Assembly (NCBI RefSeq): GCF_006345805.1
Contig: NC_042997.1
Span: 53,134,001 to 53,198,000, forward strand
DNA from: Octopus sinensis
Taxonomy: Eukaryota
Reading direction: 5' to 3'
Length of the DNA: 64,000 nucleotides
Below are positions 3,640 to 60,536 of the stretch, in pieces (within the stretch, counting starts at the first letter, position 1; each line of letters opens with the position of its first letter). The position numbers and the translations under genes were made by a program. The notes below the pieces were generated by a model. It was not told the DNA's origin. It saw nothing but the letters and a program-made list of their open reading frames with translations, and searched no databases.

Positions 3640-3807
3640 CTGTCATCCCCCTCTCTCTCTCTGTCTCTCTCTTCCTCCCTTTCTATATCACCCTCTCTCT
3701 GTCTCTCTCTTCCTCTCTTTCTATATCACCCTCTCTCTCTCTGTCTCTCTCTTCCTCCCTTTCTATATCACCCTCTCTCTCTCTCTCTCTTCCTCCCTTT
3801 CTATATC

Positions 3808-3840
<33 letters not shown>
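3640..3840. repeat. CT-rich low-complexity tandem repeat (ctctgtctctctcttcctccctttctatatcaccctct, about 4 copies)
   Basis: tttctatatcaccctctctct is repeated four times. Confidence 0.85.
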
Positions 3841-3874: not shown

Positions 3875-4567
3875 CAAAGGGTCTAATTTCGTTGAGGATT
3901 TCTACAAAGGGTTTAATTTCGTTGAGGATTTCTACAAAGGGTCTAATTTCGTTGAGGATTTCTACAAAGGGTCTAATTTCGTTGAGGATTTCTACAAAGG
4001 GTCTAATTTCGTTGAGGATTTCTACAAAGGGTCTAATTTCGTTGAGGATATCTTCAAAGGGTCTAATTTCGTTGAGGATTTCTACAAAGGGTCTAATTTC
4101 GTTGAGGATTTCTACAAAGGGTCTAATTTCGTTGAGGATTTCTACAAAGGGTCTAATTTTGTTGAGGATATCTTCAAAGGGTCTAATTTCGTTGAGGATT
4201 TCTACAAAGGGTCTAATTTCGTTGAGGATTTCTACAAAGGGTCTAATTTCGTTGAGGATTTCTACAAAGGGTCTAATTTCATTGAGGATATCTTCAAAGG
4301 GTCTAATTTCGTTGAGGATTTCTACAAAGGGTCTAATTTCGTTGAGGATTTCTACAAAGGGTTTAATTTCGTTGAGGATTTCTACAAAGGGTCTAATTTC
4401 GTTGAGGATTTCTACAAAGGGTCTAATTTCGTTGAGGATTTCTACAAAGGGTCTAATTTCGTTGAGGATTTCTTCAAAGGGTCTAATTTCGTTGAGGATT
4501 TCTTCAAAGGGTCTAATTTCGTTGAGGATTTCTACAAAGGGTCTAATTTCGTTAAGGATTTCTACAG
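3875..4567. repeat. 30-bp minisatellite (aaagggtctaatttcgttgaggatttctac), about 23 copies
   Basis: Directly visible head-to-tail units with no spacers. Confidence 0.97.
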
Positions 4568-6639: not shown

Positions 6640-8170
6640 TCTCATCATCATCATCATCCTCATTTAACATTCATTTAACATTCCTATGCATGCATAGGAC
6701 AGTTGACAGGGACCAGCCAAGTAGAAGGCTACCCCAGTCTACTGTGTCTGTTTTGGCAGGGTTTTTGCAGCTGAATACCCTTTCTAACACCAGCCACTCT
6801 GCAGAGTGAACTCAGTGCTTTTAACGTGGCACTAGCACAGGCAAGGTTAGTTTTGGTATGATTTTTACAGCTGGATGCCCTTCCAAATGCCAACCACTTT
6901 ACAGTGTGGACCAGATGCTTTTTGCATTGCACCAGCACCAAATACTCACGAGACAAGGAATTTTGAGAGGGACAGAGGCATTTGAGGAAGGAACATTTGT
7001 CAGAAAATGAAAGGTTAGAGTGTGACAGAGAAATAGAGAGGCAGAAACAGCTGTTTTGCTATAGAGGAGGTACATGATTACTCAGAGAGAGAGAGAAGAG
7101 AAAGGAAGGGAGAGGAAGTGAGAGGGAGAAAGAGAGTGAGAGAGGGAGAGAGATACAAGAAAGAGGACAGAAACAGATGTGCTGATATAAAGGAGCTAAT
7201 TGGTTAACTAGTCAGAGGGAAAAGCAAGAGAAGGAGAGAAAGAGTGATCAAGAATGTGGTCAGAAACAGATGTACTGCTATAGAGGAGATACATGGCTAC
7301 CTAGCCAGAGTGAAGAGCAAGGGGAAGAGAGAGAGAGGGTGGGAAATAGCAAAAATGCAAGAGAGCAGGAGATGGTGAAGTGCCAGGGTATACTCACAAG
7401 TTACAAGGATCAGAACATAGGTGTGATGGTAGAGTAAAGAAGGGAGAAGTATGGAGGTCATAATATACGTGGTCAGGTATTACCAAGAAGATGCAAATAG
7501 GGACTGGGAATTGCAGTGACTTTACTCATATGCATCACATGTCCAAACCAATGCATTCTCCTCTTCTGCATGCCATATTTAATCCCTCTTATGCCTTACT
7601 TTTCTCTCAACATAGTTGTGCTTTGTCGGTCATACATATTGATGTTGCAAATCTGATGGAGTATACCACCTTCATTCCTCTCCAGTCTATGCATGTCCTC
7701 CACATTCAGAGTCTCTGTTTCACTACCATGTAGTATAGCCATTCTCACATAAGCATCATACAATCTACCTTTTACTCTGAGAGAGAGTCATTTTGTTGAG
7801 AACAGAGATAGTAGCTCTCTGAACTTCTATCCTCTTCTTATTCTAGAAACAATACTTTCAGAGCATCCACCACCATTACTAATTTGGTCACCTAAGTAGT
7901 AGAAACTATCTACTACCTCTAGAGAGCTACCTGGGCATTTGATAGAGTCTAAGTCTCTCATGTTCTTAGTGATTGCTGTTCCTGTGTATCTGCCACACAC
8001 AAAAGCAACCTTATCTGTTAACCTACCTGCGATTCCACTGCATTTCTTATGCACCCATAGCTTACATTGGGTGTAGCAAATGGAATTACTTCCCACTCCT
8101 TTCCTACATATTGAGCTGGGCCATTTTCCTGGAGGAAAGAGAGTCTTATCTGTTTTCTTGCTAACAAGAA
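6640..8170 (-). mobile_element. 5'-truncated RTE-clade LINE
   Basis: ORF 7827..8096 (GSNSIC..C..WVHKKCSG...LEVVDSFYYLGD) and RMHWFGHV near 7550, with a (GAT)n tail at about 6640. Confidence 0.85.
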
Positions 8171-10611
8171 AGAAATAAAATGGAATGTTATGGAACTGTC
8201 AAAATAGGTGAAAAAGAATATTTCAGAATTTTAGCTTCTATTGTTATCTGAATTTTACAGTGAGTGTCTGGGTTTTCAGTTCATAACAAACTCTTGTTGT
8301 GTTGAAGCATATTAGTATAAATAAACAATATGTATTAATAAATAATTCCATTTTTATCTATTATTTTGTGATTCATAAGAAAAAGAAAAATATTCAAATT
8401 TTAATTTTGGTTAGAATCTTACTGTGCTGCTAACTAGAAACAGCAGCTAAATCTCACTCAAATCACACCTTCCCATCTTAAACAAAAAATTGAAAGGAAC
8501 ATGTAACAATGTAATTTTAAATGCAGAAACAGATGGGATAGTCACACCAAGAATACCTGAAATCATAGGTCTGCTCAATCAAGCCTAACCTAAGAGCTAA
8601 ACAAAAACAACAATAAGTCATGTGGGTGAGGAAAAATACCTCAGAGGAGTGTTCTGTATACTAAATGCAGAAACAGTAGGGTCTTGCCTTATTTATTGCA
8701 GAGAATTGAAAAAAAAACTTTGATCCTTAAAACACACTCCTAGTAAAAGAATTTTCACACTAACTAGTTTAAGTATTTTTACTTATCACTTTTCCAAACA
8801 GAGAAGATGATAATTGTTGATCACTTGAAAGAAATTAAGAAATTATAAATACGTTACATTTCTCTTGATCGAAGAGAAGAGCTTTAAATTGTATTTGGTT
8901 TTAAATAATCTTAACGGACAAATGTTAGATTGTTTATTTCTTCTTCAGGAAAGACTCAGACAAAAATAAATAGATTTATGAGGAAAACCCAAAATTTAGA
9001 TCAAATATTTTATTTTGTTTCTTTTTATTCATGTAACAAAATATTCAACAGTTTATTATCTCTTATACATATGAAAATAACAATTGACATATATACATTT
9101 GCATATAAACAACATATAAGATAGACGTTGACATATAAATATGAATGTTCGTATGTACACATATGAATATAATATCACATTTTCTCCAGTTTGAAAATTG
9201 GGAAAATAAAAAAAAATTCACATTCTTACTAATATATAATTCCTCTCAATTTCAAACATAGATTCAACAGTTATAAATTAGTCATTGTTTACAACAAGTA
9301 GCCTGTAAAATAATGAAAATGGCAGTAATGATTTTTTTTTTTTTTTAAGACAATAAATTTTAGTTGAGGACATGAAAGAAACATAATTTTAACATGTTCA
9401 ATGTTCATGAAATATTACCGAAATATTACTAAGTAAAAGAAAAAATTAGTCTGCTTACATTTTATAAATACTGATGTTTGATCGATAAATTGAATTACCA
9501 ATAATTTGGGACTGTTTTCAACTGATCACAACACTGTCAGCCACAGTATAACCAAATGGTTAAGAAGTTCACTTTGCAACCATGAAGTGTTGGGTTCAAT
9601 CCCACTGCATAGCATCTTTGGCAAATGTTATTTTCTGTAGCCTCAGATCATCTTGTGAGTTTGGGTAGACAGAAACTGTATAGAAGTTCATCTATATGGA
9701 TTGCACCTGTAATTCAAGGTACAGCCTTGTCACACAGATTTCTGTCTAAGAATTACATTAAAAGTACACATGTCTGTGGAATGCTCAGCCACTTACACGC
9801 TAATTTGGTAAGCAGGTAATCCATTTGATCACATAACTGAATACTCATCACCAAAATTGATGGAGATACATCCATATACACATTCACACGTCTAAGCACA
9901 TATATATATATATATTCATATACAAATAGACACACAGGTATACACATATTATGTCTTTAAGTGTATATCTATGTGTGTGTGTGTTTGTATGTATGCATGA
10001 TATGCATATATATATATATATATATTCATATACAAATAAACACACAGGTATACACATATTATGTCTTTAAGTGTATATCTATGTGTGTGTGTGTTTGTAT
10101 GTATGCATGATATGCATATATATATATATATATAATACATAATAGATACACACAAATAGAAGATGTATATGAATATGTATACGATGATGATGACATACAT
10201 GTGTATAACATTGGGGTCAAAAGTGGGTGGAGGTAGGATAAAGGAAAAAAATATATCACTGACTTTTAGGTACAAAAAAGTGAAGTTGTATTATATTTGA
10301 GATCACAACGAGTATATACGTATATACGTATATATAATTGTAAGTGTATCTGTGTGTGTATATCTGTGTGTGTGTTTGTATATATGTGTATATATATATA
10401 TATGTGTGTATGTATATACATATATATGTATATGTAAATATATATATATATATATATGTATATGTGTATATGTATGTATATATATGCATATATATGCATA
10501 TATTTGTATATTTATGTCTATGTATATATATCTATGCATATGTATATATATATATATATACATACATATATGTATATATATATATATAATGTATGTATAT
10601 ATGTGTGTGTG

Positions 10612-13857: not shown

Positions 13858-13896
<39 letters not shown>

Positions 13897-14442
13897 ATGT
13901 GTGTATTTGTATATATACATACACATACATATATATATATATATAATGAAGATAAATATGTGTGTGTATATGTATGTATGTATGTATGTATGTATATATA
14001 TATATAAAGAGAGAGAGATTCATATGTATATACATATATATAAAACGAAAATAATTATATGTGTATATATTGTGTGTATGAGCATACACACACACACACA
14101 GATTTATATATATGCATGTTACATAGCTATTCTCTTTATATAAAGATTCCTCATTCATACCTTCTTTGATATGAAGATGAATCATTAGATTCAAATATAA
14201 TTGCCTGCCACATGTTGTTATATTTGACAAGATCTTTTTAAAATGAATTTTGATTTCTTGAAAGATTTTCACTTTCTTATTTCACGAAATGAAATCAACC
14301 ATATAGAGATTTTACACATGTTTCCTAGATGTTAAAATGTCTTGCAAGGAATCGAAATAAAATTTGGTAATTCCATTTACCATAGATGCTACTAAATGCA
14401 TCTCATGATTTTAGAAACTTGATATTTCTGCTTTAAACTCAT

Positions 14443-17400
14443 TTACCGATCTTTTTCATCTGATGTAGTGAAATAGTCCATAAACTGTTTATATGTGTGA
14501 GTTGAAGCATGCTCAAGAACTGTGAGTAAGTCAATCTTCTGTTCATGATCTTGCTGTTCAATTTCTTTGACATCTGCAAAAATATCAGCTTCTTTTCCCT
14601 TTCCATCATCTTCTTCCAGTACAATTAATGGAGGCATCTTTGACTTTAGCTCCTCTACCACTGACATTAGTTGTGAAATTAGACCTGGCTCATCATCAGT
14701 TTTATCCTCACAAGTATCACCTTCACATGTGCTAGCCTCTTCTTCACTATCTGGGATACCATCACCATCATCATCATCATCTAAATAGTCAGGGACACCA
14801 TCGCCATCAGCATCTTCTTTATAGTCAGGTATACCATCACCATCAGAGTCTCCTTCCAAATCATCAGGGATACCATCCCCATCACTATCGGCATCTAAAT
14901 GGTCAGGTATACCATCACCATCACCGTCAGACTCTTCATCAGCATCAGGGATACCATCACCATCATCATCATCATCAAGATAATCTGGAATGCCATCACC
15001 GTCAGTATCTAAGTCTACATCAGCATTATCAATTTCTTGGGCATCGGGAATACCATCACCATCTGAATCAGGGTCTGCAAAATCAATGATACCATCACCA
15101 TCTTTATCATCATCTAAAGTATCAGGAATACCATCGTTGTCATCATCTTCATCAATATAATCAGGTATACCATCACCATCAGTGTCCTTCAAATAATCTG
15201 GGATACCATCACCATCACTGTCCAATACCAAGTGATCTGGGATACCATCACCATCATCATCATCATCAAGATAATCTGGGATACCATCACCATCGGCATC
15301 TTCTTTGTGGTCAGGGATACCATCGCCATCAGTATCTCCTTCTAAGTGATCAGGGATACCATCACCATCAGTATCTTCCTTGTAGTCTGGGATACCATCA
15401 CCATCACTGTCTCCCTCAAGATGGTCAGGGATACCATCACCATCATCATCATTGTCAAGATAATCTGGGATGCCATCACCATCAGCATCCTCCTTGTAGT
15501 CTGGGATACCATCACCATCACTGTCCCCTTCAAGGTGGTCTGGAATACCATCACCATCATCATCATCATCCAGATAATCTGGGATACCATCACCATCAGC
15601 ATCTTCCTTGTAATCAGGGATACCATCACCATCACTGTCCCCTTCAAGGTGGTCAGGGATACCATCACCATCATCATCATCATCAAGATGATCTGGGATA
15701 CCATCACCATCAGCATCCTCCTTGTAATCTGGGATACCATCACCATCACTGTCTCCCTCAAGATGGTCAGGGATTCCATCACCATCATCATCATCATCAA
15801 GATAATCTGGAATACCATCACCATCAGCATCTTCCTTGTAATCTGGGATACCATCACCATCACTGTCTCCTTCTAAATGATCAGGGATACCATCACCATC
15901 ATCATCATCATCCAGATAATCAGGAATACCATCACCATCAGCATCTTCCTTGTAGTCTGGGATACCATCACCATCACTGTCTCCTTCTAAGTGATCAGGG
16001 ATACCATCACCATCATCATCATCGTCAAGATAATCTGGGATACCATCACCATCGGCATCTTCCTTGTAATCTGGGATACCATCACCATCACTGTCTCCCT
16101 CAAGATGGTCAGGGATTCCATCACCATCATCATCATCGTCCAAGTAATCTGGGATACCATCGCCATCAGCATCTTCCTTGTAATCTGGGATACCATCACC
16201 ATCACTGTCCCCTTCTAGGTGGTCAGGGATACCATCACCATCATCATCATCATCCAGATGATCAGGGATACCATCGCCATCAGCATCTTCCTTGTAATCT
16301 GGGATACCATCACCATCACTGTCTCCTTCGAGGTGGTCAGGGATACCATCACCATCATCATCATCATCGAGATAATCTGGGATACCATCACCATCAGCAT
16401 CTTCCTTGTAATCTGGGATACCATCACCATCACTGTCTCCTTCGAGGTGGTCAGGGATACCATCACCATCATCATCATCATCGAGATAATCTGGGATACC
16501 ATCACCATCAGCATCTTCCTTGTAATCTGGGATACCATCACCATCACTGTCTCCTTCGAGGTGGTCAGGGATACCATCACCATCATCATCATCATCAAGA
16601 TAATCTGGGATACCATCACCATCAGCATCTTCCTTGTAATCTGGGATACCATCACCATCACTGTCTCCTTCTAAGTGATCAGGGATACCATCACCATCAT
16701 CATCATCATCCAGATAATCTGGGATACCATCACCATCGGCATCTTCCTTGTAATCTGGGATACCATCACCATCACTGTCTCCCTCTAGGTGGTCAGGGAT
16801 ACCATCACCATCATCATCATCGTCGAGATAATCTGGAATGCCATCACCATCAGCATCTTCCTTGTAATCTGGAATGCCATCACCATCACTATCTCCCTCG
16901 AGGTGGTCAGGGATACCATCACCATCATCGTCATCGTCAAGATAATCTGGGATGCCATCACCATCAGCATCTTCCTTGTAATCTGGGATACCATCACCAT
17001 CACTGTCTCCTTCTAAATGATCAGGGATACCATCACCATCATCATCATCATCAAGATAATCTGGAATACCATCACCATCAGCATCCTCCTTGTAGTCTGG
17101 GATACCATCACCATCACTATCTCCCTCGAGGTGGTCAGGGATACCATCACCATCATCATCATCGTCAAGATAATCTGGGATGCCATCACCATCAGCATCT
17201 TCCTTATAATCTGGAATACCATCACCATCACTGTCTCCCTCTAGGTGGTCAGGGATACCATCACCATCATCATCATCGTCAAGATAATCGGGGATACCAT
17301 CACCATCAGCATCTTCCTTGTAGTCTGGGATACCATCACCATCACTATCTCCCTCGAGGTGGTCAGGGATACCATCACCGTCATCATCATCGTCAAGATA

Positions 17401-20400
17401 ATCTGGGATACCATCACCATCAGCATCTTCCTTATAATCTGGAATACCATCACCATCACTGTCTCCCTCTAGGTGGTCAGGGATACCATCACCATCATCA
17501 TCATCGTCAAGATAATCTGGGATACCATCACCATCAGCATCTTCCTTGTAGTCTGGGATACCGTCACCATCACTGTCTCCTTCTAAGTGATCAGGGATAC
17601 CATCACCATCATCATCATCATCCAGATAATCTGGGATACCATCACCATCAGCATCTTCTTTATAGTCCGGGATACCATCACCATCACTGTCTCCCTCAAG
17701 GTGGTCAGGGATACCATCACCATCATCATCATCGTCAAGATAATCTGGGATACCATCACCATCAGCATCTTCTTTGTAGTCTGGGATACCGTCACCATCA
17801 CTGTCTCCTTCTAAGTGATCAGGGATACCATCACCATCATCATCATCATCCAGATAATCTGGGATACCATCACCATCAGCATCTTCCTTGTAATCTGGGA
17901 TACCATCACCATCACTGTCACCCTCGAGGTGGTCAGGGATACCATCACCATCATCATCATCATCCAGATAATCTGGGATACCATCACCATCAGCATCTTC
18001 CTTGTAATCTGGGATACCATCACCATCACTGTCTCCCTCAAGGTGGTCAGGGATACCATCACCATCATCATCATCGTCAAGATAATCTGGGATACCATCA
18101 CCATCAGCATCTTCCTTGTAGTCTGGGATACCGTCACCATCACTGTCTCCTTCTAAGTGATCAGGGATACCATCACCATCATCATCATCGTCAAGATAAT
18201 CTGGGATACCATCACCATCGGCATCTTCCTTGTAATCTGGAATTCCATCACCATCACTGTCTCCCTCAAGGTGGTCAGGGATACCATCACCATCATCATC
18301 ATCGTCAAGATAATCTGGAATACCATCACCATCAGCATCTTCCTTGTAATCTGGGATACCATCACCATCACTGTCTCCTTCTAAGTGATCAGGGATACCA
18401 TCACCATCATCATCATCATCCAGATAATCTGGGATACCATCACCATCGGCATCTTCCTTGTAATCTGGGATACCATCACCATCACTGTCTCCCTCTAGGT
18501 GGTCAGGGATACCATCACCATCATCATCATCGTCGAGATAATCTGGAATGCCATCACCATCAGCATCTTCCTTGTAATCTGGAATGCCATCACCATCACT
18601 ATCTCCCTCGAGGTGGTCAGGAATACCATCACCATCATCATCATTGTCAAGATAATCTGGGATGCCATCACCATCAGCATCTTCCTTGTAATCTGGAATA
18701 CCATCACCATCACTGTCTCCCTCAAGGTGGTCAGGGATACCATCACCATCATCATCATCGTCAAGATAATCTGGAATACCATCACCATCAGCATCTTCCT
18801 TGTAATCTGGAATTCCATCACCATCACTGTCTCCCTCAAGGTGGTCAGGGATACCATCACCATCATCATCATCGTCAAGATAATCTGGATACCATCACCA
18901 TCACTGTCTCCTTCTAAGTGATCAGGGATACCATCACCATCAGCATCTTCCTTGTAATCTGGGATACCATCGCCATCACTATCTCCTTCTAAGTGATCTG
19001 GGATACCATCACCATCACTGTCTCCTTCTAAGTGATCAGGGATACCATCACCATCATCATCATCATCCAGATAATCTGGGATACCATCACCATCAGCATC
19101 TTCCTTGTAATCTGGGATACCATCACCATCACTGTCTCCCTCTAGGTGGTCAGGGATACCATCACCATCATCATCATCGTCGAGATAATCTGGAATGCCA
19201 TCACCATCAGCATCTTCCTTGTAATCTGGAATGCCATCACCATCACTATCTCCCTCGAGGTGGTCAGGAATACCATCACCATCATCATCATTGTCAAGAT
19301 AATCTGGGATGCCATCACCATCAGCATCTTCCTTGTAATCTGGAATACCATCACCATCACTGTCTCCCTCAAGGTGGTCAGGGATACCATCACCATCATC
19401 ATCATCGTCAAGATAGTCTGGGATGCCGTCACCATCAGCATCTTCCTTGTAATCTGGGATACCATCGCCATCACTATCTCCTTCTAAGTGATCAGGAATA
19501 CCATCACCATCATCATCATCATCGAGATAATCTGGTATACCATCTCCATCTGTATCCTTTTTGTAATCCATGATTTTATTGCCTTTTCTGTCTTTTTCTA
19601 ACTTATCCGGTATACCATTACCATTCGCATCACAGTCTAGATAATCTGGTATGCCATCACCATCTGTATCTTCTTTATAATCCAATATTCCATTACCATC
19701 TGAGTCAACTTCTAATTTATCAGGTATATTGTTTCCATTTGCATCATCATCGAGATAGTCTGGGATACCATCACCATCTGTATCTTTACTTCGTGACGAT
19801 GGCAGAATTTTACCATCAGCATTAATATCTGTATCTAGCTTGTCTGGAATACCATCACCATCACTGTCTATTTCTAAATGGTCAGGGATACCATCACCAT
19901 CATCATCATCATCCAGATAATCTGGAATACCATCACCATCAGCATCTTCCTTGTAATCTGGGATTCCATCACCATCACTGTCTCCCTCGAGGTGGTCAGG
20001 TATGCCATCACCATCATCATCATTATCAAGATGATCTGGGATGCCATCACCATCAGCATCTTCCTTGTAATCTGGAATTCCATCACCGTCACTATCTCCC
20101 TCTAGGTGGTCAGGGATACCATCACCATCATCATCATCATCAAGATAATCTGGGATACCATCACCATCAGCATCTTCCTTGTAATCTGGGATGCCATCAC
20201 CATCACTGTCTCCCTCGAGGTGGTCAGGGATTCCATCACCATCATCATCATCATCCAGATAATCTGGGATACCATCACCATCAGCGTCTTCCTTGTAATC
20301 TGGGATTCCATCACCATCACTGTCTCCCTCAAGGTGGTCAGGGATACCATCACCATCATCATCATCGTCAAGATAATCGGGGATACCATCACCATCAGCA

Positions 20401-23400
20401 TCTTCCTTGTAATCTGGGATACCATCACCATCACTGTCTCCCTCGAGGTGATCAGGGATACCATCACCATCATCATCATTATCGAGATGATCTGGGATAC
20501 CATCACCATCAGCATCTTCCTTGTAATCTGGAATACCATCACCATCACTATCTCCCTCTAGGTGGTCAGGGATACCATCACCATCATCATCATCATCCAG
20601 ATAATCTGGGATACCATCACCATCAGCATCTTCCTTGTAATCTGGGATTCCATCACCATCACTGTCTCCCTCGAGGTGGTCAGGGATGCCATCACCATCA
20701 TCATCATCATCGAGATAATCTGGGATACCATCACCATCAGCATCTTCTTTATAGTCCGGAATACCATCACCATCACTGTCTCCCTCGAGGTGGTCAGGGA
20801 TACCATCACCATCATCATCATCATCCAGATAATCTGGGATACCATCACCATCAGCATCTTCCTTGTAATCTGGGATTCCATCACCATCGCTGTCTCCCTC
20901 AAGGTGGTCAGGGATACCATCACCATCATCATCATTATCGAGATGATCTGGGATACCATCACCATCAGCATCTTCCTTGTAATCTGGAATACCATCACCG
21001 TCACTATCTCCCTCTAGGTGGTCAGGTATACCATCACCATCTTTGTCGCCTTCCAAATGGTCAGGAATACCATCTCCATCATCATCATCGTCAAGATAAT
21101 CTGGGATACCATCACCATCAGCATCTTCTTTATAGTCCGGGATACCATCACCATCACTGTCTCCCTCGAGGTGATCAGGGATACCATCACCATCATCATC
21201 ATCGTCAAGATAATCTGGAATACCATCACCATCAGCATCTTCCTTATAGTCAGGGATACCGTCACCATCGCTGTCGCCCTCAAGATGGTCTGGAATGCCA
21301 TCACCATCATCATCATCATCGAGATAATCTGGTATACCGTCACCATCAGCATCTTCCTTGTAATCTGGAATACCATCACCGTCACTGTCTCCCTCGAGGT
21401 GGTCAGGGATACCATCACCATCATCATCATTATCCAGATAATCTGGGATACCATCACCATCAGCATCTTCCTTATAATCTGGGATACCATCACCATCACT
21501 ATCTCCCTCAAGGTGGTCAGGGATACCATCACCATCATCATCATCATCGAGATAATCTGGGATACCATCACCATCAGCATCTTCCTTGTAATCTGGGATA
21601 CCATCACCATCACTGTCTCCTTCTAAGTGATCAGGGATACCATCACCATCTTTGTCGACTTCTAAATGCTCAGGGATACCATCACCATCATCATCATCAT
21701 CAAGATAATCTGGGATACCATCGCCATCAGCATCTTCCTTGTAATCTGGAATACCATCACCGTCACTGTCTCCCTCGAGGTGGTCTGGGATACCATCACC
21801 ATCATCATCATTATCCAGATAATCTGGGATACCATCACCATCAGCATCTTCCTTATAATCTGGGATACCATCACCATCACTGTCTCCCTCGAGGTGATCA
21901 GGTATACCATCACCATCATCATCGTCATCAAGATAATCTGGGATACCATCGCCATCAGCATCTTCTTTATAGTCCGGGATACCATCACCATCACTGTCTC
22001 CCTCTAGGTGATCAGGAATGCCATCACCATCATCATCGTCATCAAGATAATCTGGGATACCATCACCATCTGCATCTTCCTTGTAATCTGGGATGCCATC
22101 ACCATCACTGTCTCCCTCAAGGTGGTCAGGGATACCATCACCATCATCGTCATCATCAAGATAATCTGGGATACCATCACCATCAGCGTCTTCCTTGTAA
22201 TCTGGAATACCATCACCATCACTGTCTCCCTCTAAGTGGTCAGGAATACCATCACCATCATCATCATTATCGAGATGATCTGGGATACCATCACCATCAG
22301 CATCTTCCTTGTAATCGGGAATACCATCACCATCACTATCTCCCTCGAGGTGGTCCGGGATACCATCACCATCATCATCATCATCCAGATAATCGGGGAT
22401 ACCATCACCATCAGCATCTTCCTTATAATCTGGAATACCATCACCGTCACTGTCTCCCTCTAAGTGGTCAGGAATACCATCACCATCATCATCATTATCA
22501 AGATGATCTGGGATACCATCACCATCAGCATCTTCCTTGTAATCGGGAATACCATCACCATCACTATCTCCCTCGAGGTGGTCCGGTATACCATCACCAT
22601 CATCATCATCATCCAGATGATCAGGGATACCATCGCCATCAGCATCTTCCTTATAATCTGGAATACCATCACCATCACTGTCTCCCTCTAGGTGGTCAGG
22701 GATACCATCACCATCATCATCATCATCAAGATAATCTGGGATACCATCACCATCAGCATCCTCCTTGTAATCTGGTATACCATCACCATCACTGTCTCCT
22801 TCTAGGTGGTCAGGGATACCATCACCATCATCGTCATCATCGAGATGGTCTGGGATACCATCACCATCAGCGTCTTCCTTGTAATCTGGGATTCCATCAC
22901 CATCACTGTCTCCTTCTAGGTGGTCAGGAATACCATCACCATCATCATCATCATCAAGATAATCTGGGATACCATCACCATCAGCATCCTCCTTGTAATC
23001 TGGGATACCATCACCATCACTGTCTCCTTCTAGGTGGTCAGGGATTCCATCACCATCATCGTCATCATCGAGATGGTCTGGGATACCATCACCATCAGCG
23101 TCTTCCTTGTAATCTGGTATACCATCACCGTCACTATCTCCCTCAAGGTGGTCAGGGATGCCATCACCATCATCGTCATCATCCAGATAATCTGGGATAC
23201 CATCACCATCAGCATCTTCCTTGTAATCTGGGATCCCATCACCATCACTGTCCCCTTCTAAATGGTCAGGGATACCATCGCCATCATCATCATTGTCGAG
23301 ATAATCTGGGATACCATCACCATCAGCATCTTCCTTGTAATCTGGGATACCATCACCATCACTGTCTCCCTCTAGGTTGTCAGGGATACCATCACCATCA

Positions 23401-23702
23401 TCATCATCGTCGAGATAATCTGGAATGCCATCACCATCAGCATCTTCCTTATAATCTGGAATACCATCACCATCACTGTCTCCCTCTAGGTGGTCAGGGA
23501 TACCATCACCATCATCATCATCATCAAGATAATCTGGGATACCATCACCATCAGCATCTTCCTTGTAATCTGGGATACCGTCACCATCACTGTCTCTCTT
23601 TAGGTGATTAGGGATACCGTGTCCACCACTGTCCTTCTTCAGTTTTGCAGAGCTGGTTTTCGCATCAATCGAAAGTATTTTTCTTTTACAAAATGTGCAG
23701 AC
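14443..23702 (-). CDS. Giant exon encoding an about 3,085-aa Asp-rich protein segment of tandem TSP3-like (DxDGDGIPDxxD/E) Ca2+-binding repeats; one 1-bp frameshift at about 18888
   Basis: ORF track 18495..23759 and 14443..16143 lie in frames offset by one base. The offset is explained by ctggat versus the usual ctgggat at 18885-18890. Strong acceptor tctttttttcttttTAAG|GTC at 23704-23702. Unit [38 protein letters not shown] (114 bp), with unit-to-unit changes mostly at third codon positions. Unique N-terminal (VCTFCKRK...) and C-terminal (...[10 protein letters not shown]) flanks are in the same frame. Confidence 0.88.
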
Positions 23703-25439
23703 CTTAAAAAGAAAAAAAGAAAATATCTTACTATATTTGTAATATGGATTTTTGTACAAATCATTTTTTTTTTTTTCTTCATGTGGTGCAAGATGTACTG
23801 AATTGTTACAGCTTTCGTTTTAGGAAGTTGAAGGTTTATATTTGATTTCTGTGCAATACCGCACATGCAGTAAGTTTTGATAGTAAAATTTTGAAAGCTG
23901 TTTGTATCAAATGAACTGCATCTAAAATTCAAAGGATCAACCTCTATATACATATTGACACACAATTTGTATGATTATTATGTTTGGCCAAAAACATCTG
24001 AATCATACTTGACAACTTATACAATTCCTTTTATGAAATAGCTCAAACAATCATCTGTGGAATTAATGTGATCCATCATTATGTATTTTATTGTATCTAT
24101 TTACATGTTTACATATTTTATAATATCCTATTTAAATTATATTTATTGTCATAGTTATCATTTAGGTCTGTTGTTGCTTTCAACTTCAATATATGTTAAC
24201 ATTTGCTTAAGGTATTCCAGCCATGACCATCTCATCTTTTTGAAGTCTCTAGAACTACATTATTTGATAATATGCAATGTTTTTTCTCAAGACAGAAGAG
24301 TGATGTTTGACTGATATTTGGTTTTTATTTTTAGTAGGTCTGGCAGCTACTAAGATGCTCCCCATGATTTATGTTTATTGTTTGATAAGGTGGTGTAATG
24401 GAAGAAATCAAAATTCAGGAATTACCTTATTAGATTTCATTATCATATATTGTTTAAATTCACTGAATTCACCTATGTCTTTCAACTTGGGACTGATAAA
24501 ATAAGTACCAGTCATTTATTAGGGTTAATTCTATTTGTTATACAATTATCTCCTAAAAGGTACATGACATTGTAGGAATCATGTCATTATTAGCTTTGCT
24601 ATCATTGTCATCATTATTATTATTGATGGGCTGGCAGAATTGTTATTATGCTGGGCAAAATGCTAAGCAGCACTTTGTCCATCTTCGTGTTCTGAGTTCA
24701 AATTCTGCTCTGCTTTTCATTCTTTTGGGGTCAATAAATTAAGTACCTGTGAAACACTGGGGTTGACGTGATCAGCTAGTCTCCTCTGCCAAAATTTCAG
24801 GCTTTGTGCTTTCAGTAGAAAGGGCTGTTATTATTATTATTATTATTATTGTTATTATTATTATTGGTGAGCTGGCAGAATTGTTAGCATGCTGGGCCAA
24901 ATGCTTAGTGGCGTTTCACCCATCATTATGTTCTAACTTCAAATTCCAACAGGGTTGTCTTTGCCTTTCCTCATTTTGGGGTCAATAAAAAATAAGTACT
25001 GGTTGTGCAATGGGGTTGATACAATCAACTTATCTCCTCTCCTGAACTGGCCAACCTTGTGCTAAAATTTGAAATCATTATTGTTGTTGTTGTTGTTGTT
25101 ATTATTAGTGAGAATGCATGAGTGCAATAAATTTCTCATTCTCTTTGTATACTCTCTGCTGGTGATTTGTTTCATTTCTTCATATTATATTTCATCCGCT
25201 TTCAGTATCCCCAAATACTTATATCACTGTCCTTTCTCAACCTCTTTTATTGTTTGCCCATTTGGCATTTCAATACCCTACCTTCCTTCAAATCTTACTC
25301 ATTTCATTTTCAACATAGTGTACATATCCATAAAAAGATGATTTATCTGACCATATCCTTTTCCCAAATCATAAGCTATTTTAACTTTATGCAATATCAA
25401 ACTGAGTGGTATAATGGCCAATATAAATAGTAGTGGAGA

Positions 25440-26765
25440 TAAGCTATTGCATTAAAATATTCCATGTCTGATGTTCACTTTTCCAAGTCTTTGTTTTCCT
25501 CCAATCAATTCAGTATTCCAATGTTTCGTACTTTCATTAACCATTTTCTCCATATTTTCTACCTCTCCAAACATGTTCATTGTTTTACTTATCCAGCTGT
25601 ACAATACTGTGTCATATGCTCTTTTGTAATCTAACCATGCTACATTTAGTCCCATCAATTTGCACGTACAATTTCTAATTATCTAATTATCAATTAATAG
25701 TGGTCTTTTGTTGCCTTACTTTATTTCCTGCATCCTTTCTGCTCTTCTGGAAGTAGATTATAACTTTCTGGATGATTAGATAACTTTTTCACCAAGACAC
25801 TGGTCATAAGCTTGCACATAAGTGGTAAACAGGTTATAGGTAAAAAATCTGATGTCAAGTTACCTTTCAAGGGATCCTTGAGACATAACAGCATTTGTCC
25901 ACTTGTCATCCAGGTAGGGACATGACCATGTTACAGGCTTTCATCCAGTTGTGCTGCGATCCTTTCATGCTACTGTATAAAGTTCTTCAGCCAGTAGCCT
26001 TGTACTCCTTCCAAGCCAGGTCCTTTCTAATTTACTATTTTATTTTAAACTTCAGTCTCACTGTATATAGATTGATTCTGACCTCCTTTTCGTCTTGGCA
26101 CAACTGCAAGTTGTCTTTCCACCTGTTTTAGCCACTCTGCACTTTCTTAATGTCTCACTGACCTTTTTTTACAGTTCACTCCAAAATATTTTACTTTCTT
26201 TGACATCAGGAATCATTTCCTGATGTTGGTTCCCCTCTATTTTGTCAAAAAGATGCCTTCTATTTGATTGGAACAGTCTATTCTGTTCAAAGCTTTTGCA
26301 TCTAGTATCATATCTTTTCAGTTTGGCCTTTAATAATATCACCCTTAGTGACAATTCTTCATGTACTGTTTACTTCTCCCTTTCTTCTAACCTGTACTGT
26401 CCATTCAACCATCTGATTACTCACTCATTCTTGAGCTCTCCTCTCATTATCCTATTCTATTACCCCACTTTTTTCCGTATCTTTTCTGACTTCAGTCATA
26501 TTTTCTTCCTCCAGTTTAGTTCTTCCTTTTCATTTCCTTTAATTTCTTCAGTTTTCCACTTGTAGCCTACTATGTCAGCTACATCATTAGCAGCAGCTAT
26601 GATTAGCTGGTTTGTTCCACTGATGTTTTCTGTTCTAATCAAGCTCAAAATGTCATTTACTTTGGCTCTGGCTCTCCTTACTTTCCTTCTGTCCATATAT
26701 CTGACATTTGGTGGTACTTCATTGTTCCCATAACACATTTTACCTCACAACATTTCCAGAATCTC
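25440..26765 (-). mobile_element. R4/Dong-clade non-LTR retrotransposon, N-terminal and RT fragment, decayed
   Basis: ORF pieces ...PITCLPLMCKL...LPEEQKGCRK, VAWLDYKRAYD, and FEQNRLFQSNRR. Confidence 0.85.
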
Positions 26766-26821
26766 CTTCTCTTCATCATTCAAATCTTGTGCAGCAGTTG
26801 TTGTTATTATTATTATTATTA

Positions 26822-26854
<33 letters not shown>

Positions 26855-27027
26855 TATTATTATTTTTTTTTTCTTCTTTCAAATTTGCTTCCATTTCTTG
26901 ACGAGTGTCTTCCCGACTCCTAGGGCAAAGAAACTCATAGTATACATTGGTAGGCCATTAAACTAAACTCAATAATTTGTTCATTTTTTTTTTAAGTTAA
27001 ATTAAAATACATGGGTAGTAATAGTTC

Positions 27028-27105
<78 letters not shown>

Positions 27106-27111
27106 TATTAC

Positions 27112-27154
<43 letters not shown>

Positions 27155-27184
27155 TATTATTATTGTCTTTGCATAGCTTCTAAT

Positions 27185-27990
27185 GCTGGAGATGTACTAC
27201 GGTGTCAGCTGTTCATTACCAGTGAACCATCCAGAGTATTGGAGTGGTTCCAAGCAGTGCAGCTTTCTACAAGTGCTCCACCCTTATTGCAGCCCCTATT
27301 TGTTTCATGTACTTCTCAAGATTTTTACTCACTGTTCCCAGGGCTCTTACAATTATTGGTACTACTACCACCTTTTCAGCGACCACAACTGCTTAACCTC
27401 CTGAGCTAACCTGTCATATCTATCGACTTTCCTTTCTTCCTTATTGCATACATTGTTGTCAGCTGGGCATGCTATATCTATGATCCAGCATTGTTTGCTT
27501 TCTTTCTCAATTAACACTATGTCTGGTTTCCTATTCTCTATCTCATGGTCACACTGAATCATAAAATCCCATAGGATCTTTACATTATCATTTTCGATGA
27601 TGTCTTCGGGTTTATGTTTGTACCACTTTTTTACTCTGTCAGGTCCATATTTGTTGCAAAGTGTCCAATGGACAATCCTTACTATATTGTCATTATGTCT
27701 CTTATAGCCACTGGGCTAGTGGCGTACATTGACTGGTAATATGCCACACAGTTTCACCATTTTGTCCACAAATTCTGCACTTATCACTTTCTAATGTGTT
27801 GTCTATTCTGTATTTGATGTAATTTGTTCTTAGTGCTTGCTCTTGGGCAACACAGATTAGAGTCTCCATTTCTGGTTTTAAATCACTTTTAGTCATCCAT
27901 AGCCATCTTTTTTCTCTGTCTTCAACATCTCTATGTAATTGTCTATGCATTCTTTTCTTAATCCACCTATTTTCAGTTTCATTCATTCAT
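27185..27990 (-). mobile_element. R4/Dong-clade 3' fragment (CCHC zinc knuckle plus restriction-like endonuclease) with (TAA)n tail
   Basis: AQEQALRTN...KCRICG...ETVWHITSQC and RKPDIVLI...CWIIDIACP. The (TAA)n run at 27025-27165 lies directly 3'. Confidence 0.9.
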
Positions 27991-28320
27991 TCATTCATTC
28001 ATTATTATTGTTGTTGTTGTTGTTGTTGTTATTGTTGTTATTGTCGTCGTCATCATCATCATCATCATTATTATTATTATTATTATTATTAGAGCAGTAG
28101 ATTGGCAGAATTGTTAGAATATTGGAACAAATGCTTTACCTTGTTTGTTCCAACTCCTTACATTCTGAGTTCAAATCCTGATGAAACGAAGTTTGCCTTT
28201 TATCTTTTTGGGTCAATAAAATAAAATACCCATCAAGTGCTAGGTCAATCTATCAACTAGCCCCCACCCAACAAAGTGTTGGCCTTGTGTCTATAACAGA
28301 AAGAGTTATTATTATTATCA

Positions 28321-34160: not shown

Positions 34161-35472
34161 CAGGGTGGTATATGGAAAAGTAGTCTGGATTCTGTTGCAT
34201 AGTGTAAATACAGAAATGAATTTATAAGTGCTGGAAGGGACACACCATCATAGAAGATTTTGAAAATAGTTACCTGCAGCATCAATATACAGCTATGTTT
34301 ATTTACACCCAATGTAAAATAGTGATGTCAATGGTGGTTCCTGTATTATGTGCAGATTTTTTCATATGTTGTGCTCTTTATGTGTTCCAGAGATAATTAT
34401 ACATGTCAGGAGAACGTGGTGGTCACAAATTTTTGATAACCGTGTGTTCCTCAGAGAATATACCATGGACTTGCTGCATGCACACTGGAAAAGTGTGGTA
34501 AGTCACCCTGTCCTGCTGGAAGAAGTACACTTGTCTTCCAAGTTCAGTGAGTTGAGCACAAAATTGGTCCAAAATGTTCATGTAGACCTCTGTGTTGACA
34601 GTACTGTCAAAAAATATTGATCCAATGATACGTGTCCCTGAAACAGCACACCAAACACTGTTTTTTTATTGTGAAGTGACTCCTCATACAAATGGTGAGG
34701 ATTCTCCACTGCCCAGTACCATGTGTTTTGTGGATTTACATAGCTGAAGAGATGAAACTATGGTTCATCACTCATTATATTCCAGAATAGGTGTGGCTCA
34801 CCATTAGCAATGCTATTCAGAAGTCATGTTCTGTAATTTACTTGTTTATTCTTGTCATCCACTTTTAATTGTTTTACACAGGTGAAATGATATGGTTTCA
34901 ACTTGAAACTTTTTGATATCCGTTGGCATGACCTCCTCCTTATGTGAGACTGCTGTACCAATTTATGTGTTGACTTCTTTGGAATTTGAGTAATCCTTTG
35001 CTTAATGTCCTGAATAACTTCTGGCCTTTGAACTGTAGGGTATCTTTGTTTTGGGGTGTTGTGCGCTGACCCTGTAGTGCACCACTTCTTAACCAGCATT
35101 TATATCATTCTCTTTGCTGGTAAGCCTTTACCTGGAAACTTGACTTCAAAACATTTGTGCATTTGCTTAACAGAACCTGTTCTCACATACACTTCCACAT
35201 TCTCCACTCATTCTGCTATCAAGTATTTCATCTTGCAGAAAAGGCTAGAAATGCTCATTCAGTGTCATCTTACAATCAACTAATGTGGTGAGGGTGCACT
35301 GAGGGTAACATAGCAAATAGTCGACTTGTGCGCCATCTTTGTTCAGCAGTTAGAACTGGTGAAAATAACACAATGACAAATGAAAGACTGGGTGCTTTTT
35401 CATGTGTGTAAATATATTTCTGTATTTACACTATGCTACAGAATCCAGGCTACTTTTCTGTGTGCCACTCTG
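34161..35472 (-). mobile_element. Full-length decayed Tc1/mariner DNA transposon (1,312 bp)
   Basis: About 55-bp TIRs (CAGGGTGGtatatggAAAAGTAGtCTGGATTCTGT... / ...ACAGAATCCAGGCTACTTTTctgtgtgCCACTCTG), TA on both sides, HTH-like ORF 34824..35099, and a WPPRSPD motif with W mutated to stop near 34425. Confidence 0.92.
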
Positions 35473-39709: not shown

Positions 39710-40645
39710 CATCATCATCATCATCATTATATAACGTCCGCTTTCCATGCTAGCATGGGTTGGACAATTTGACTGAGGTCTGGCAAACCAGATGCCTGCA
39801 CCAGGCTCCAGTCTGATCTGGCAGAGTTTCTACAGCTGGATGCCCTTCCTAATTCCAACCACTCCGAGGATGTAGTGGGTGCTTTTATGTTCCACTGGCA
39901 TGAGGGCCAGTCAGGCGGTACTGGCATGAGGGCCAGTCAGGCGGTACTGGCAACAGCCATGCTCAAATGGTGCTTTTTATGTGCCACCTGCACAGGAGCC
40001 AGTCCAGTGGCACTGGCAATGACCTTGCTTGAATATTTTTTCATGTGCCACCAGCACAAGTGCCAGTAAGGCAGTAAGTGCAGGTAACAATCACACTCGA
40101 ATGGTGCTCTTCATGTGCCACCGGCACAGAAGCCAGCCTCTTGCTCTGGCAACGATCAAGCTCGGATGGTACTCTTAGCGCTCCACTAGCATGCCAGTCA
40201 TCGAATTTGATTTCGATTTCACTTGCCTCAACAGGTCTTCGCAAGCAGAGTTTAGCGTCCAATCAAGGAAGGAGCCAATGAATAAGTGGGCTGGTTACAC
40301 CCCTGGCATAGGCCACAAGGTTATGGTCTCACTTGGCTTGCCGAATCTTCTAAAGCACAGCATATTTCCAAACGTCCCGGTCACTAGTCATTGCCTTGGT
40401 GAGGCCCAATGTTCGAAGGTCATGCATCACCACCTCATCCCAGGTCTTCTTGGGTCTACCTCTTCCACAGGTTCCCTCAACCGCTAGGGTGTGGCACACA
40501 GCTATCCACATCCATTCTCGCCACATGGCCATACCAGCGCAGTCATCTCTCTTGCACACCACATCTGATCCTTCTTAGGTCCAACTTTTCTCTCAAGGTA
40601 CTTACTCTCTGTCGAGTATGCACACTGACATTACACATCATATAA
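39710..40645 (-). mobile_element. 5'-truncated RTE LINE with (GAT)n tail
   Basis: ORF 40350..40562 VEGTCGRGRPKKTWDEVV..DL..LGL, with a 3'UTR shared by the copies at 44235, 54470 and 56990. Confidence 0.9.
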
Positions 40646-40649
40646 ATTA

Positions 40650-40728
40650 TATATAATATCTATCTATATATATATTATGTATATATATATGTATACATAT
40701 GATATATATATATATATTTATATATATA

Positions 40729-40776
<48 letters not shown>

Positions 40777-40812
40777 ATATATTATATATATATATATTAT
40801 ATATTATGTATA

Positions 40813-40869
<57 letters not shown>

Positions 40870-40875
40870 ATATAT

Positions 40876-40916
<41 letters not shown>

Positions 40917-41047
40917 ATATTATGTATATATATATTATATATATATATATATATTTTATATTATGTATATATATATATCATATATATGTATACATATTAT
41001 GTATGTATTTTATACATATTATGTATATATATTATATATATGTATAC

Positions 41048-41078
<31 letters not shown>

Positions 41079-41340
41079 TGATAGAAATGGCAAGACAACA
41101 AAAGAATGAAAGAGACCTCAATATTATGTAAATAGAGGAATTTATCTGTAAATATAATAAGTGGGAATTATTCGGTAACCATGATGAAACTCTGAGTTTC
41201 GGATGTCGGGCCAGAAACCCATGCCGGCATCTCTTCAGTTATAGGGCCATAAAAAAAAATGCTATGAAAATGACTGTTAAAACAAGGGAAATTACTTTGT
41301 TTTTTCTAGGTGTTGCAATTCTGGCCAAAACTTATCTAAG

Positions 41341-41374
<34 letters not shown>

Positions 41375-41597
41375 TTATATATATACATATATATATATAC
41401 ATATATATTATACATATATATATATATACATATATATAATACACATATATATATATACATATATATATATACATATATATATATACATATTATATATACA
41501 TATATATATATACACATATATATATACACATATATATATATACATATATATATATATAATATATATATATACATATATATATATACATATATATATA

Positions 41598-41652
<55 letters not shown>

Positions 41653-41775
41653 CATATATATTATACATATATATATATACATATATATACATATATATAT
41701 ACATATATATATATATATGTATATATATATTATACATATATATATATTACATATATATTATATATATATATATGT
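40650..41775. repeat. Two large degenerate (TA)n/(TACA)n microsatellite blocks (40650-41080, 41340-41775)
   Basis: Near-pure AT dinucleotide sequence. Confidence 0.95.
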
Positions 41776-42033
41776 ATCATGAGGGCACATAACCTAGTGG
41801 TTAGGGTGTGCAAGATCATGCTTTCACTACATGGACCAGGTAGTGCATTGTATTCTATGTATTCTAGAGCAAAACACTTAATCTAACATTGCTCTTTGAT
41901 CATTCCAACATCTAATGCATGGTACACTGTGCAGCTGTTTAGACTATGATTTGATGAAAGGAGTGGGCTAATGTGCAGCATATACATTTGATAAACAAAT
42001 CATTTGTGCAAGTTGTTTAGTAAAAACTGAACA

Positions 42034-43633: not shown

Positions 43634-44234
43634 TATATATATATAAATATATATATATACTGTATATATATGTATGTATATATATATGTATATATAGGGA
43701 GTATTGTATTTCGCTTGAAGCATTGTGCATTGTTTGTATGGTACAACAATGCACTATAATACAAAAAAATGAACTATATACCTGTTGTAATGTAGTTATC
43801 TGATGATATTTTGGAATAAAATTCCTTCTTCAGATATTCTTAGACGGAGTTACTGCCATATATATAATAATATATATATATACTGTATATATATGTATGT
43901 ATATATATATGTATATATAGGGAGTATTGTATTTCGCTTGAAGCATTGTGCATTGTTTGTATGGTACAACAATGCACTATAATACAAAAAAATGAACTAT
44001 ATACCTGTTGTAATGTAGTTATCTGATGATATTTTGGAATAAAATTCCTTCTTCAGATATTCTTAGACGGAGTTACTGCCATATATATAATAATTATATA
44101 TATATAATAAGAATATCTGAAGATGGAATTTTATTCCGAAATATCATTGGACTATGAATAACTAAATTACAACAGGTATATCGTCCATTTTTTATATTAT
44201 AGTGCATTGTTGTACCATTCAAAACTTTTTATAT

Positions 44235-52208: not shown

Positions 52209-52452
52209 TTTATTTGTATTCAAATATTAAAAAACAAATTTTAAATACATTAACCAAAAAGTAATACCTTTGACAACAGAGGAAAAAAAATGTTCCACTT
52301 TCTTGTCAGTAATTGGCTTCTATAAATAGTTATCTCAAAGGTTGAATGAAAATGGATACAGATGCAAAACTATTTTATCACTGTTATAAAGAAACCAACT
52401 TGATAATTTTAAGAGGGCAGAAAAAGAGAAAGAATAAGTAGAAAGATTTATT
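52209..52452 (-). promoter_or_regulatory. Candidate AATAAA polyadenylation signals of the short GRP94 transcript (52447-52452, 52209-52214)
   Basis: Plus-strand TTTATT hexamers about 260 and 500 nt downstream of the stop. The motif is common in AT-rich DNA, so support is weak. Confidence 0.35.
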
Positions 52453-52712
52453 CACAAAGAATGATGTGTACACTTTCAATTCACTTCAGGCATAACAGTT
52501 TCACATGAAAAAAAATACAGAAACAAACAGAGAAAAGTCCTCTCAAAAAATGAAATGATATTTGACAGCAATATTTGATTTGATGAAGTATTAGTGAATT
52601 CTCCAAGGTAGTTGATAGGTGGTACTTGGTGGTAATAGGAAATTTCACACTTGTCAGGAACAACAGCTGCCAACTTTGTTAGTGTGAACAGAATAATTCC
52701 TCTTCAATGAGG

Positions 52713-52739
52713 TTATAATTCATCTGAATGATGGGATAC
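52713..52739 (-). CDS. HSP90B1: Endoplasmin/GRP94 terminal coding exon VSHHSDEL* (KDEL-like ER retrieval signal)
   Basis: Acceptor cttttcattttatCAG followed by GTA TCC CAT CAT TCA GAT GAA TTA TAA. Phase 0 matches the previous donor. SDEL fits the [KRHQSA]-[DENQ]-E-L pattern. Confidence 0.85.
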   Translation of the reverse strand, partial: VSHHSDEL

Positions 52740-55513: not shown

Positions 55514-55606
55514 TTTTTCTTCCTTTTCATCTGTTTCACTTGCATCAGCATCAACCTTTTCTTCCTGTTCTACTTGCTCCTCTTGTTCTTCAGGTTCTTC
55601 CTCAAC
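55514..55606 (-). CDS. HSP90B1: Endoplasmin/GRP94 acidic-tail exon VEEEPEEQEEQVEQEEKVDADASETDEKEEK
   Basis: VEEEPEE matches the start of the GRP94 acidic tail. Acceptor tttTAG, donor AAA|GTAAGT. 93 nt, phase 0-0. Confidence 0.92.
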
Positions 55607-55881
55607 CTAAAACATTTCAGTTAAAATTCTTATTTCCTAATGCCAAGTAATTAAACTAAGGTGTTATAAGAGTATGATAGAAATGGGGATTTAAGTGGAT
55701 GCATGTCATTTGTGAATATCCATTTGGAGGGGAAGGGAAGATTTAGTGGGCCAAGGAGGAGGTAATAAAGAACAATAATAGAGAGAATGTGAAGCGTAAT
55801 GGGTAAAATAGTTATTTACAGCATTAGAAATAGTGCTGTAGCTCGACGAGTGATGGGGGAAATGGATGTTAGAAAGTAAGT

Positions 55882-55918
<37 letters not shown>

Positions 55919-60457: not shown

Positions 60458-60536
60458 CTCAACTTTTTCTTTCAACATTTTGATAAGCTTGTGTCTGGGA
60501 TTTATTTCAAGTGTTCTTTTCTGGTTAGCAAAATAG
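60458..60536 (-). CDS. HSP90B1: Endoplasmin/GRP94 exon (D)YFANQKRTLEINPRHKLIKMLKEKVE
   Basis: HSP90 C-domain LEINPRH motif. Acceptor ttttttttcCAG, donor GAG|GTAAGT. 79 nt, phase 2-0, in frame with both neighbours. Confidence 0.95.

Follow-up and report, generated by a model that had tools for sequence, protein, structure and literature searches.

A giant coding exon on the minus strand of a 64,000-nucleotide stretch of the Octopus sinensis genome (RefSeq assembly GCF_006345805.1, contig NC_042997.1, positions 53,134,001 to 53,198,000; hereafter the window, in whose own numbering the coordinates of this locus are given) encodes about 228 tandem copies of an aspartate-rich motif of the thrombospondin type 3 (TSP3) calcium-binding kind. 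Judged by its reading frame, its substitution pattern and its splice acceptor, it is the large coding exon at the 3' end of an animal gene that is uncharacterised and under selection. This piece of a gene is real, is kept by selection and has apparently escaped annotation; its architecture is extreme, it uses a known TSP3 loop, and it fails the defining features both of the thrombospondin family and of the bacterial TSP3 proteins.

Architecture of the giant exon

Two overlapping minus-strand open frames, 18495..23819 and 14443..18894, translate into one and the same type of repeat, and they are linked by a shift of one base at about 18886, where the sequence reads GGTATCCAGATTAT and the sister units read GGTATCCCAGATTAT. 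With one lacking base allowed for, the exon comprises 3,086 codons between the acceptor at 23702 and the TAA at 14443-14445. An earlier sequence-only reading of the window had described a frame of about 3,085 codons with one 1-bp lesion, which agrees with this result, a single C being absent near 18886; the location it gave, 14443-23702, holds as coordinates, with the correction that the feature lies on the minus strand. The exon and its parts are the following.

14443..23702, minus: giant coding exon, TAA stop at 14443-14445 included, defined from open frames, translations, read-through statistics and the ratio of nonsynonymous to synonymous substitution rates (dN/dS)
23703..23725, minus: phase-0 splice acceptor, a polypyrimidine tract tttctttttttcttttt plus aag, followed by the exon start GTC TGC
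23634..23702, minus: unique N-terminal 23 codons, with a CxxC pair (CTFC) and a basic KRK stretch, then a degenerate first motif
14749..23590, minus: tandem array of 114-nt (38-residue) units of three motifs each, defined by Tandem Repeats Finder, unit statistics, per-position residue counts and Pfam
19539..19880, minus: degenerate island within the array, with Asp-to-Asn or Asp-to-Lys changes and the sole internal Cys, where the 114-nt lag identity falls to 0.58
18885..18887 (about 18886), minus: the only frame-breaking lesion, one C absent from a CCC run, GGTATCCAGAT
14749..15234, minus: 3'-terminal part of the array, whose motifs are older and diverged and run up to ...DGDGIPD, recognised from translation, lag identity and residue counts
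14446..14748, minus: unique C-terminal tail of 101 residues, with a second Cys pair (CEGDTC) and predicted helices, present in a single copy in the genome

Tandem Repeats Finder describes the interval 14749-23590 as 74.5 copies of a 114-nt period and as 231.6 copies of a 39-nt period. The consensus 38-residue unit contains 15 Asp and 2 Glu, exactly the composition read earlier, and is made of three motifs of the form D-x-D-G-D-G-I-P-D-x-x-[D/E], the third of which is flanked by (DD) and (G). About 228 motifs are in register, against some 230 in the sequence-only reading; pattern counts over the giant exon give 223 matches to DGDG[IV]PD and 224 exact matches to the consensus D.D.DG..D..[DE]. 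According to the per-position counts, D1, D3, G4, D5, G6, I7, P8 and D9 are retained in 226-228 of the approximately 228 motifs, and position 12 is Asp or Glu except in a few degenerate copies.

The 3,086 codons specify 1,150 Asp (37%), 168 Glu, 540 Gly and 5 Cys, and the product has a calculated mass of about 325 kDa, in line with the figure of over 300 kDa proposed before, and an isoelectric point of about 4. Of the five Cys only one, that of the degenerate island, falls within the array, which is thus essentially Cys-free, as had been claimed. It contains neither disulfide-forming Cys nor spacers between the loops, and runs through one uninterrupted exon. The unique flanks quoted in the earlier reading are both present in the translations, and the C-terminus, ...SDEKDR, is unlike a KDEL-type signal.

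Coding potential and selection

In a repeat of this kind the openness of a frame alone is little proof that it is coding: the opposite strand, too, has frames that run for more than 1,200 codons before a stop. The selection test compared each 114-nt block with the adjacent block, the blocks being taken without regard to the protein that they encode, and dN/dS was calculated by the Nei-Gojobori method. Adjacent units mismatch at 5.3%, 2.1% and 23.1% of codon positions 1, 2 and 3, respectively, and in the coding frame this corresponds to a dN/dS of 0.088 with a dS of 0.54. The other five frames give dN/dS values of 1.2-2.6, save one antisense frame at 0.2: the antisense frames stand at 2.1-2.6, and at 0.2 where the wobble positions coincide. 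Since the mismatches between adjacent units are mostly at third positions, the units have had a long time to diverge at silent sites while their protein sequence was kept the same. On this substitution pattern, which far exceeds chance expectation, the array is real coding sequence under purifying selection.

The plus strand carries antisense open frames at 19826-23611 and 15090-18917, of 1,261 and 1,275 codons, which are rich in His, Gly, Tyr, Leu and Pro. These are a by-product of the repeat and do not point to a second gene.

The lesion at about 18886 is the only one that breaks the frame in 9,260 bases. Once the frame is corrected, dN/dS is 0.097 on the 5' side of the frameshift and 0.052 on its 3' side, and because constraint is evident on both sides, the lesion is either a very recent deletion or a homopolymer consensus error. 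It could be argued that the frameshift is real and that the exon is a decaying pseudo-exon, or a satellite that merely looks coding, no longer expressed; the frame-breaking deletion, the lack of a start codon within the exon and the lack of any protein with this tail in public collections, in the length ranges searched, would fit such a relic. This explanation is nevertheless very improbable, as dN/dS values of 0.05-0.10 at a dS of 0.4-0.6 extend across the 9 kb and on both sides of the lesion, the lesion sits in a homopolymer run, a typical place for a long-read consensus error, and the splice acceptor is intact.

Family membership and relatives

The motif of the array was recognised early on as the TSP3-type calcium-binding motif, and a Pfam scan bears this out, with scores far over the cut-offs. 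The bacterial model TSP3_bac (PF18884) scores 181.9 and 171.3 bits, and the animal model TSP_3 (PF02412) scores 93.8 and 117.3 bits, both against a cut-off of 25; Pfam finds nothing besides TSP3 in the giant exon. Among solved structures, a sequence match is obtained with one alone, the type-3 region of COMP (3fby). On these matches, the repeat of the array is a thrombospondin-type-3 motif.

The higher score of the bacterial model raises the question of whether the exon is bacterial, either as a contaminant or as a TSP3-repeat surface protein recently acquired from bacteria by horizontal transfer, all the more as the top-scoring database matches are OmpA, type IX secretion system (T9SS) and Ig-domain proteins of bacteria. 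These matches, however, are limited to the generic motif. The array is embedded in AT-rich animal DNA, with microsatellites, fragments of short and long interspersed elements (SINE and LINE) and, elsewhere in the window, an endoplasmin gene with introns. Where a start codon and signal peptide would stand it has a splice acceptor, and it carries no bacterial anchor domains. The triplet unit and the intron position are, moreover, common to a second eukaryotic contig, described below. A bacterial origin is therefore regarded as extremely improbable.

Most of what the first homology search returned were bacterial repeat proteins with nothing but the generic motif in common, and P0024 was the only informative match. 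This is a 1,907-residue open frame in ENA assembly ERZ28675667, contig ctg711 (L014 10001-15724), on a 4.3-Mb eukaryotic contig with 35% GC; the assembly is filed with prokaryote-style gene calls. P0024 holds 47 motifs in about 16 triplets and 38% acidic residues. It has the same three-loop unit as the octopus exon (first motif DSDxDGIPD..D), likewise within one uninterrupted giant exon without a true ATG, and it opens at a phase-0 acceptor, ttcctttcaag/GAA TCG TGT GAA ATC TGC (the slash marks the junction), with the CxxC pair one or two codons after the junction in both exons. Two further Cys occur in its tail, as they do in the octopus tail. The two differ in that acidic spacers of about 35-80 residues separate the triplets of P0024, whereas the octopus array is continuous. 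Given this shared anatomy, the P0024 exon is homologous to the octopus giant exon, in a second eukaryote.

Upstream of P0024, gene callers have turned large simple-sequence arrays into artefactual proteins, the longest of 835 residues. These surroundings include a 15-nt repeat that reads as TDNHS... for about 2 kb (L018 1-1950) and poly-GAT/ATC tracts that translate as poly-Asp (L017 5700-6700).

The tail of 101 residues matches no Pfam family. Compared with 1.84 billion cluster representatives, it yields only three chance matches, to phage-fibre-like coiled coils, at E of about 1e-5, and a word-index search finds nothing among proteins of 55-175 and 1,100-3,500 residues, a range that leaves proteins of 176-814 and of more than 3,500 residues outside. 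The predicted product from a Logan-type contig, of 111 residues, would fall inside the lower of these ranges; proteins of 815-1,099 residues were covered only by the first homology search, which was swamped by repeat words. The sequence-only reading had recognised no named gene, and over the length ranges searched the tail likewise brings up no relative with the same flanks.

In the literature the motif brought up one item, an earthworm (Eisenia) hydrolysate peptide that was assigned to the Owenia fusiformis gene model Ofus.G011730 (PMC11547318, Table 2). On this assignment, proteins with such a motif are made in annelids. Set beside the sequence with which the octopus array closes, the peptide may point to an annelid relative of the octopus giant-exon family.

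Within the octopus genome, searches with the repeat unit, the tail and the P0024 tail (2.72-Gb assembly, 13,516 contigs) match this locus only, with no paralog; one match on C13 was discarded as a simple repeat. The sole canonical thrombospondin of the genome (TSP_3 plus TSP_C) lies on another chromosome, at C2:8.72-8.74 Mb, and TSP_C occurs in the genome at C2:8.73 Mb only.

Gene anatomy and the missing 5' part

The junction at the start of the exon reads tttctttttttctttttaag/GTC TGC, a textbook acceptor of a phase-0 intron, and the giant open frame has no in-frame ATG ahead of the array. Because the exon opens at an acceptor and no ATG precedes the array, the exon should be part of a gene that needs at least one upstream coding exon. 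The description of the feature as a single exon stands insofar as the array is uninterrupted; as a description of the whole gene it does not.

The stop codon TAA overlaps GTAAAT, a possible splice donor. This use of the site has been provisionally rejected, and the TAA is taken as the real stop, since P0024 too stops shortly after its last motifs, no recognisable coding exon lies downstream in the window, and there is neither a TSP_C domain on this chromosome region nor a DEL-stop exon downstream. The first minus-strand AATAAA/ATTAAA 3' of the stop is 1.28 kb away, and the 3' untranslated region would thus be long, or a variant signal would be used. The likely 3' untranslated region includes (TG)n/(TA)n microsatellites at 13860-14042, about 400-580 nt past the stop.

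The search for the 5' part of the gene scanned the window from 23.7 to 56 kb for an ATG followed by a hydrophobic stretch and a phase-0 donor. The only candidate with an ATG and a strong donor, at 24426-24515, was rejected: it lies inside a SINE copy and has no signal peptide. SINE copies (...tgaactcagaacacgaagatggacaaagtgctgcttagcattttgcccag...) are found at 24400-24700 on the minus strand, and related copies at about 39.9-40.3 kb and 44.4-44.7 kb. The regions upstream of the octopus locus and of P0024, when compared as protein, revealed no exon common to both.

Going upstream on this strand, the first gene to be met is that of endoplasmin (GRP94/HSP90B1), whose 3' half occupies 52447-64000 of the window on the minus strand, and whose exons match endoplasmin structures with E = 1e-60. 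Two of its exons are relevant here.

55514..55606, minus: penultimate endoplasmin exon, encoding the acidic tail VEEEPEEQ...DEKEEK, with the phase-0 donor AAA/GTAAGT
52713..52739, minus: last endoplasmin coding exon, of 27 nt, which encodes VSHHSDEL plus the stop and nothing else; from here the giant exon is 28.7 kb downstream

An intron of 2.8 kb separates the acidic-tail exon from the VSHHSDEL exon, and the [DE]EL-stop of endoplasmin is the only one on the minus strand of the window. As read from the genomic sequence, this exon layout would allow alternative splicing to swap the retrieval signal to the endoplasmic reticulum (ER). It could thus be envisaged that the giant exon is an alternative 3'-terminal exon of endoplasmin, in which the SDEL exon is replaced by the array to give a fusion of an ER chaperone with a calcium sponge, devoid of retrieval signal; endoplasmin is a chaperone that binds calcium in the lumen in its own right. 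The isolation of the retrieval signal on a tiny last exon, the position of endoplasmin immediately upstream on the same strand, the in-frame junction that the phase-0 endoplasmin donor and the phase-0 giant-exon acceptor would form, and the fact that no independent first exon was detected between the two are all consistent with this. The match in phase, however, has one chance in three of arising by luck, endoplasmin has an AATAAA of its own at 52447-52452, about 270 nt past its stop, and the splice would require a 31.8-kb intron that skips the normal terminal exon. The idea is further weakened because no endoplasmin exon, and no recognisable gene, was found within 46 kb upstream of P0024, of which about 36 kb were covered by tblastn and the outermost 10 kb by a listing of long open frames only. 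An endoplasmin isoform is hence quite unlikely, and its adjacency hints only faintly at the ER. The surroundings of P0024 point to a gene of its own, with a first exon that would be short, far away or little conserved.

The remainder of the window is AT-rich and contains microsatellites, a 30-nt minisatellite, and SINE, LINE and mariner fragments. The minisatellite, at 3875-4566, consists of 23 copies that match at 96% and is open in several frames (KGLISLRIST...), with no sign of coding; an 80-nt CT-rich repeat at 3645-3832 adjoins it. Transposon remnants were identified by eye at 25400-28000, 34400-35100 and 7830-8198, all on the minus strand, and they comprise LINE-type reverse-transcriptase-like pieces, a mariner/Tc1-like transposase fragment and a Cys-rich piece that resembles a retroelement zinc finger. 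There are also an (AT)n tract of about 1.1 kb at 40640-41777 and a 223-nt duplication at 43635-44106.

Proposed function

The type-3 repeats of thrombospondin-1 form a wire of 13 repeats that holds 26 Ca2+ sites, whose affinity is about 100 uM (PMC2755945). By analogy, each loop of the octopus array, made up of Asp1, Asp3, Gly4, Asp5, Gly6, an Ile7-Pro8 turn, Asp9 and an acidic residue (Asp or Glu) in position 12, should bind one to two Ca2+ with an affinity of about 0.1 mM. At sub-micromolar Ca2+ the chain would be an expanded polyanion, and at millimolar Ca2+ it would take up about 200-450 ions and compact. Such behaviour would be of use only in the lumen of the ER or sarcoplasmic reticulum (SR), in secretory vesicles or granules, or outside the cell. 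The proposed model, which we hold to be rather probable, is that the product is a high-capacity calcium buffer of the secretory pathway, or a matrix or gel protein there that is set and cross-linked by calcium, and that its Cys pairs at both ends could join chains to one another. Calcium binding and its stoichiometry in the array are extrapolated here from thrombospondin, and the compartment is the weakest link of this favoured model.

The placement in the secretory pathway has to be weighed against the possibility that the product is a cytosolic or nuclear polyacidic protein, with a role based on charge, such as the binding of basic proteins or of other cations. No signal-peptide exon was detected at the octopus locus or at that of P0024, the CxxC pair and the basic KRK stretch at the exon start could be a zinc-binding or nuclear-targeting module, and the spacers of P0024 resemble generic acidic disordered linkers. 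Charge alone, however, would not account for the near-invariance of Gly4, Gly6, Ile7 and Pro8, together with the acidic ligands, in about 228 copies, which argues for a defined loop geometry, and at the affinity of about 100 uM known for thrombospondin such loops would stay empty in the cytosol. An intracellular, charge-based role is consequently considered unlikely.

Several further observations weigh against the calcium-buffer or matrix model, or against the wider family in which it is placed. The assembly carries the frameshift. No convincing first exon, start codon or signal peptide was found in the 28.7 kb upstream of the giant exon at the octopus locus, nor in the 46 kb upstream of P0024, where the first-exon scan matched simple repeats only. 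The tails of P0024 and of the octopus exon are not significantly alike, and similarity between low-complexity repeats inflates apparent homology. AlphaFold, run on a single sequence only, gives no confident fold for either the units or the tail, with a predicted local distance difference test (pLDDT) score of 53 for four units and of 51 for the tail, which is modelled as helical with low confidence.

It is tentatively proposed, as a possibility that we hold to be less than even, that the octopus exon and P0024 represent an undescribed animal family of giant Cys-free calcium wires, each encoded in one exon and made of a conserved three-loop unit, possibly with members in annelids too. Within a secretory compartment such wires would form the principal high-capacity store of calcium, or a gel that calcium sets. 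In a bolder version of this proposal, the array would reach the ER as part of endoplasmin, of which it would form an alternative C-terminus. If the proposal is correct, the octopus member, with about 228 loops and potentially 200-450 Ca2+ per chain, would stand far above any characterised TSP3 array in size.

If it is expressed, the protein would be among the most calcium-dense encoded by an animal genome. In cephalopods, calcium storage, the formation of statoliths or of another matrix, and calcium-set secretions are candidate roles. The array would also offer a natural test of how a bare TSP3 wire folds with calcium in the absence of the disulfides and partner domains of thrombospondins, and could serve as a source of compact metal-binding repeat units. 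The locus further illustrates how a gene under strong selection can go unannotated when it consists of a long repeat that contains one consensus error.

Comparison with known systems

Thrombospondins and COMP share with the octopus exon the loop D-x-D-x-D-G-x-x-D-x-x-D, and in both cases low-affinity calcium binding at multiple sites is expected. They carry 13 motifs, as opposed to about 228 in the octopus array, all of which lie in one exon, and they have Cys and disulfides between the repeats as well as EGF-like and TSP_C domains, which the octopus exon does not have. Having no interleaved Cys, and no EGF or TSP_C domain nearby, the product of the giant exon is, by its domain content, not a thrombospondin.

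The bacterial TSP3 proteins (OmpA, T9SS and Ig-domain surface proteins) resemble the array in their long runs of the Cys-free motif DxDxDG[IV]PDxxD, with 40-56% local identity, and differ from it in having signal peptides and anchor or sorting domains, whereas the octopus array has the anatomy of an animal gene. In the bacterial proteins P0003 and P0004 the spacers between motifs are irregular, in contrast with the strict 38-residue triplet of the octopus array, and the ends are different.

Calsequestrin, the histidine-rich calcium-binding protein (HRC) and sarcalumenin are low-affinity, high-capacity Ca2+ stores that possess signal peptides and are located in the SR; in HRC and sarcalumenin the acidic repeats are largely confined to one exon or to an alternative isoform. 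They are very acidic, as is the octopus product, which would resemble them in its proposed role. They contain no TSP3 loops, whereas the octopus array uses a structured loop.

Aspein and Asprich, from bivalve shells, and the phosphophoryn part of DSPP consist of simple poly-Asp or DSS runs, for which binding of calcium or mineral has been proposed. Like the octopus exon, they combine an extreme Asp content with long single-exon repeats that are prone to sequencing frameshifts; unlike it, they have no defined loop motif.

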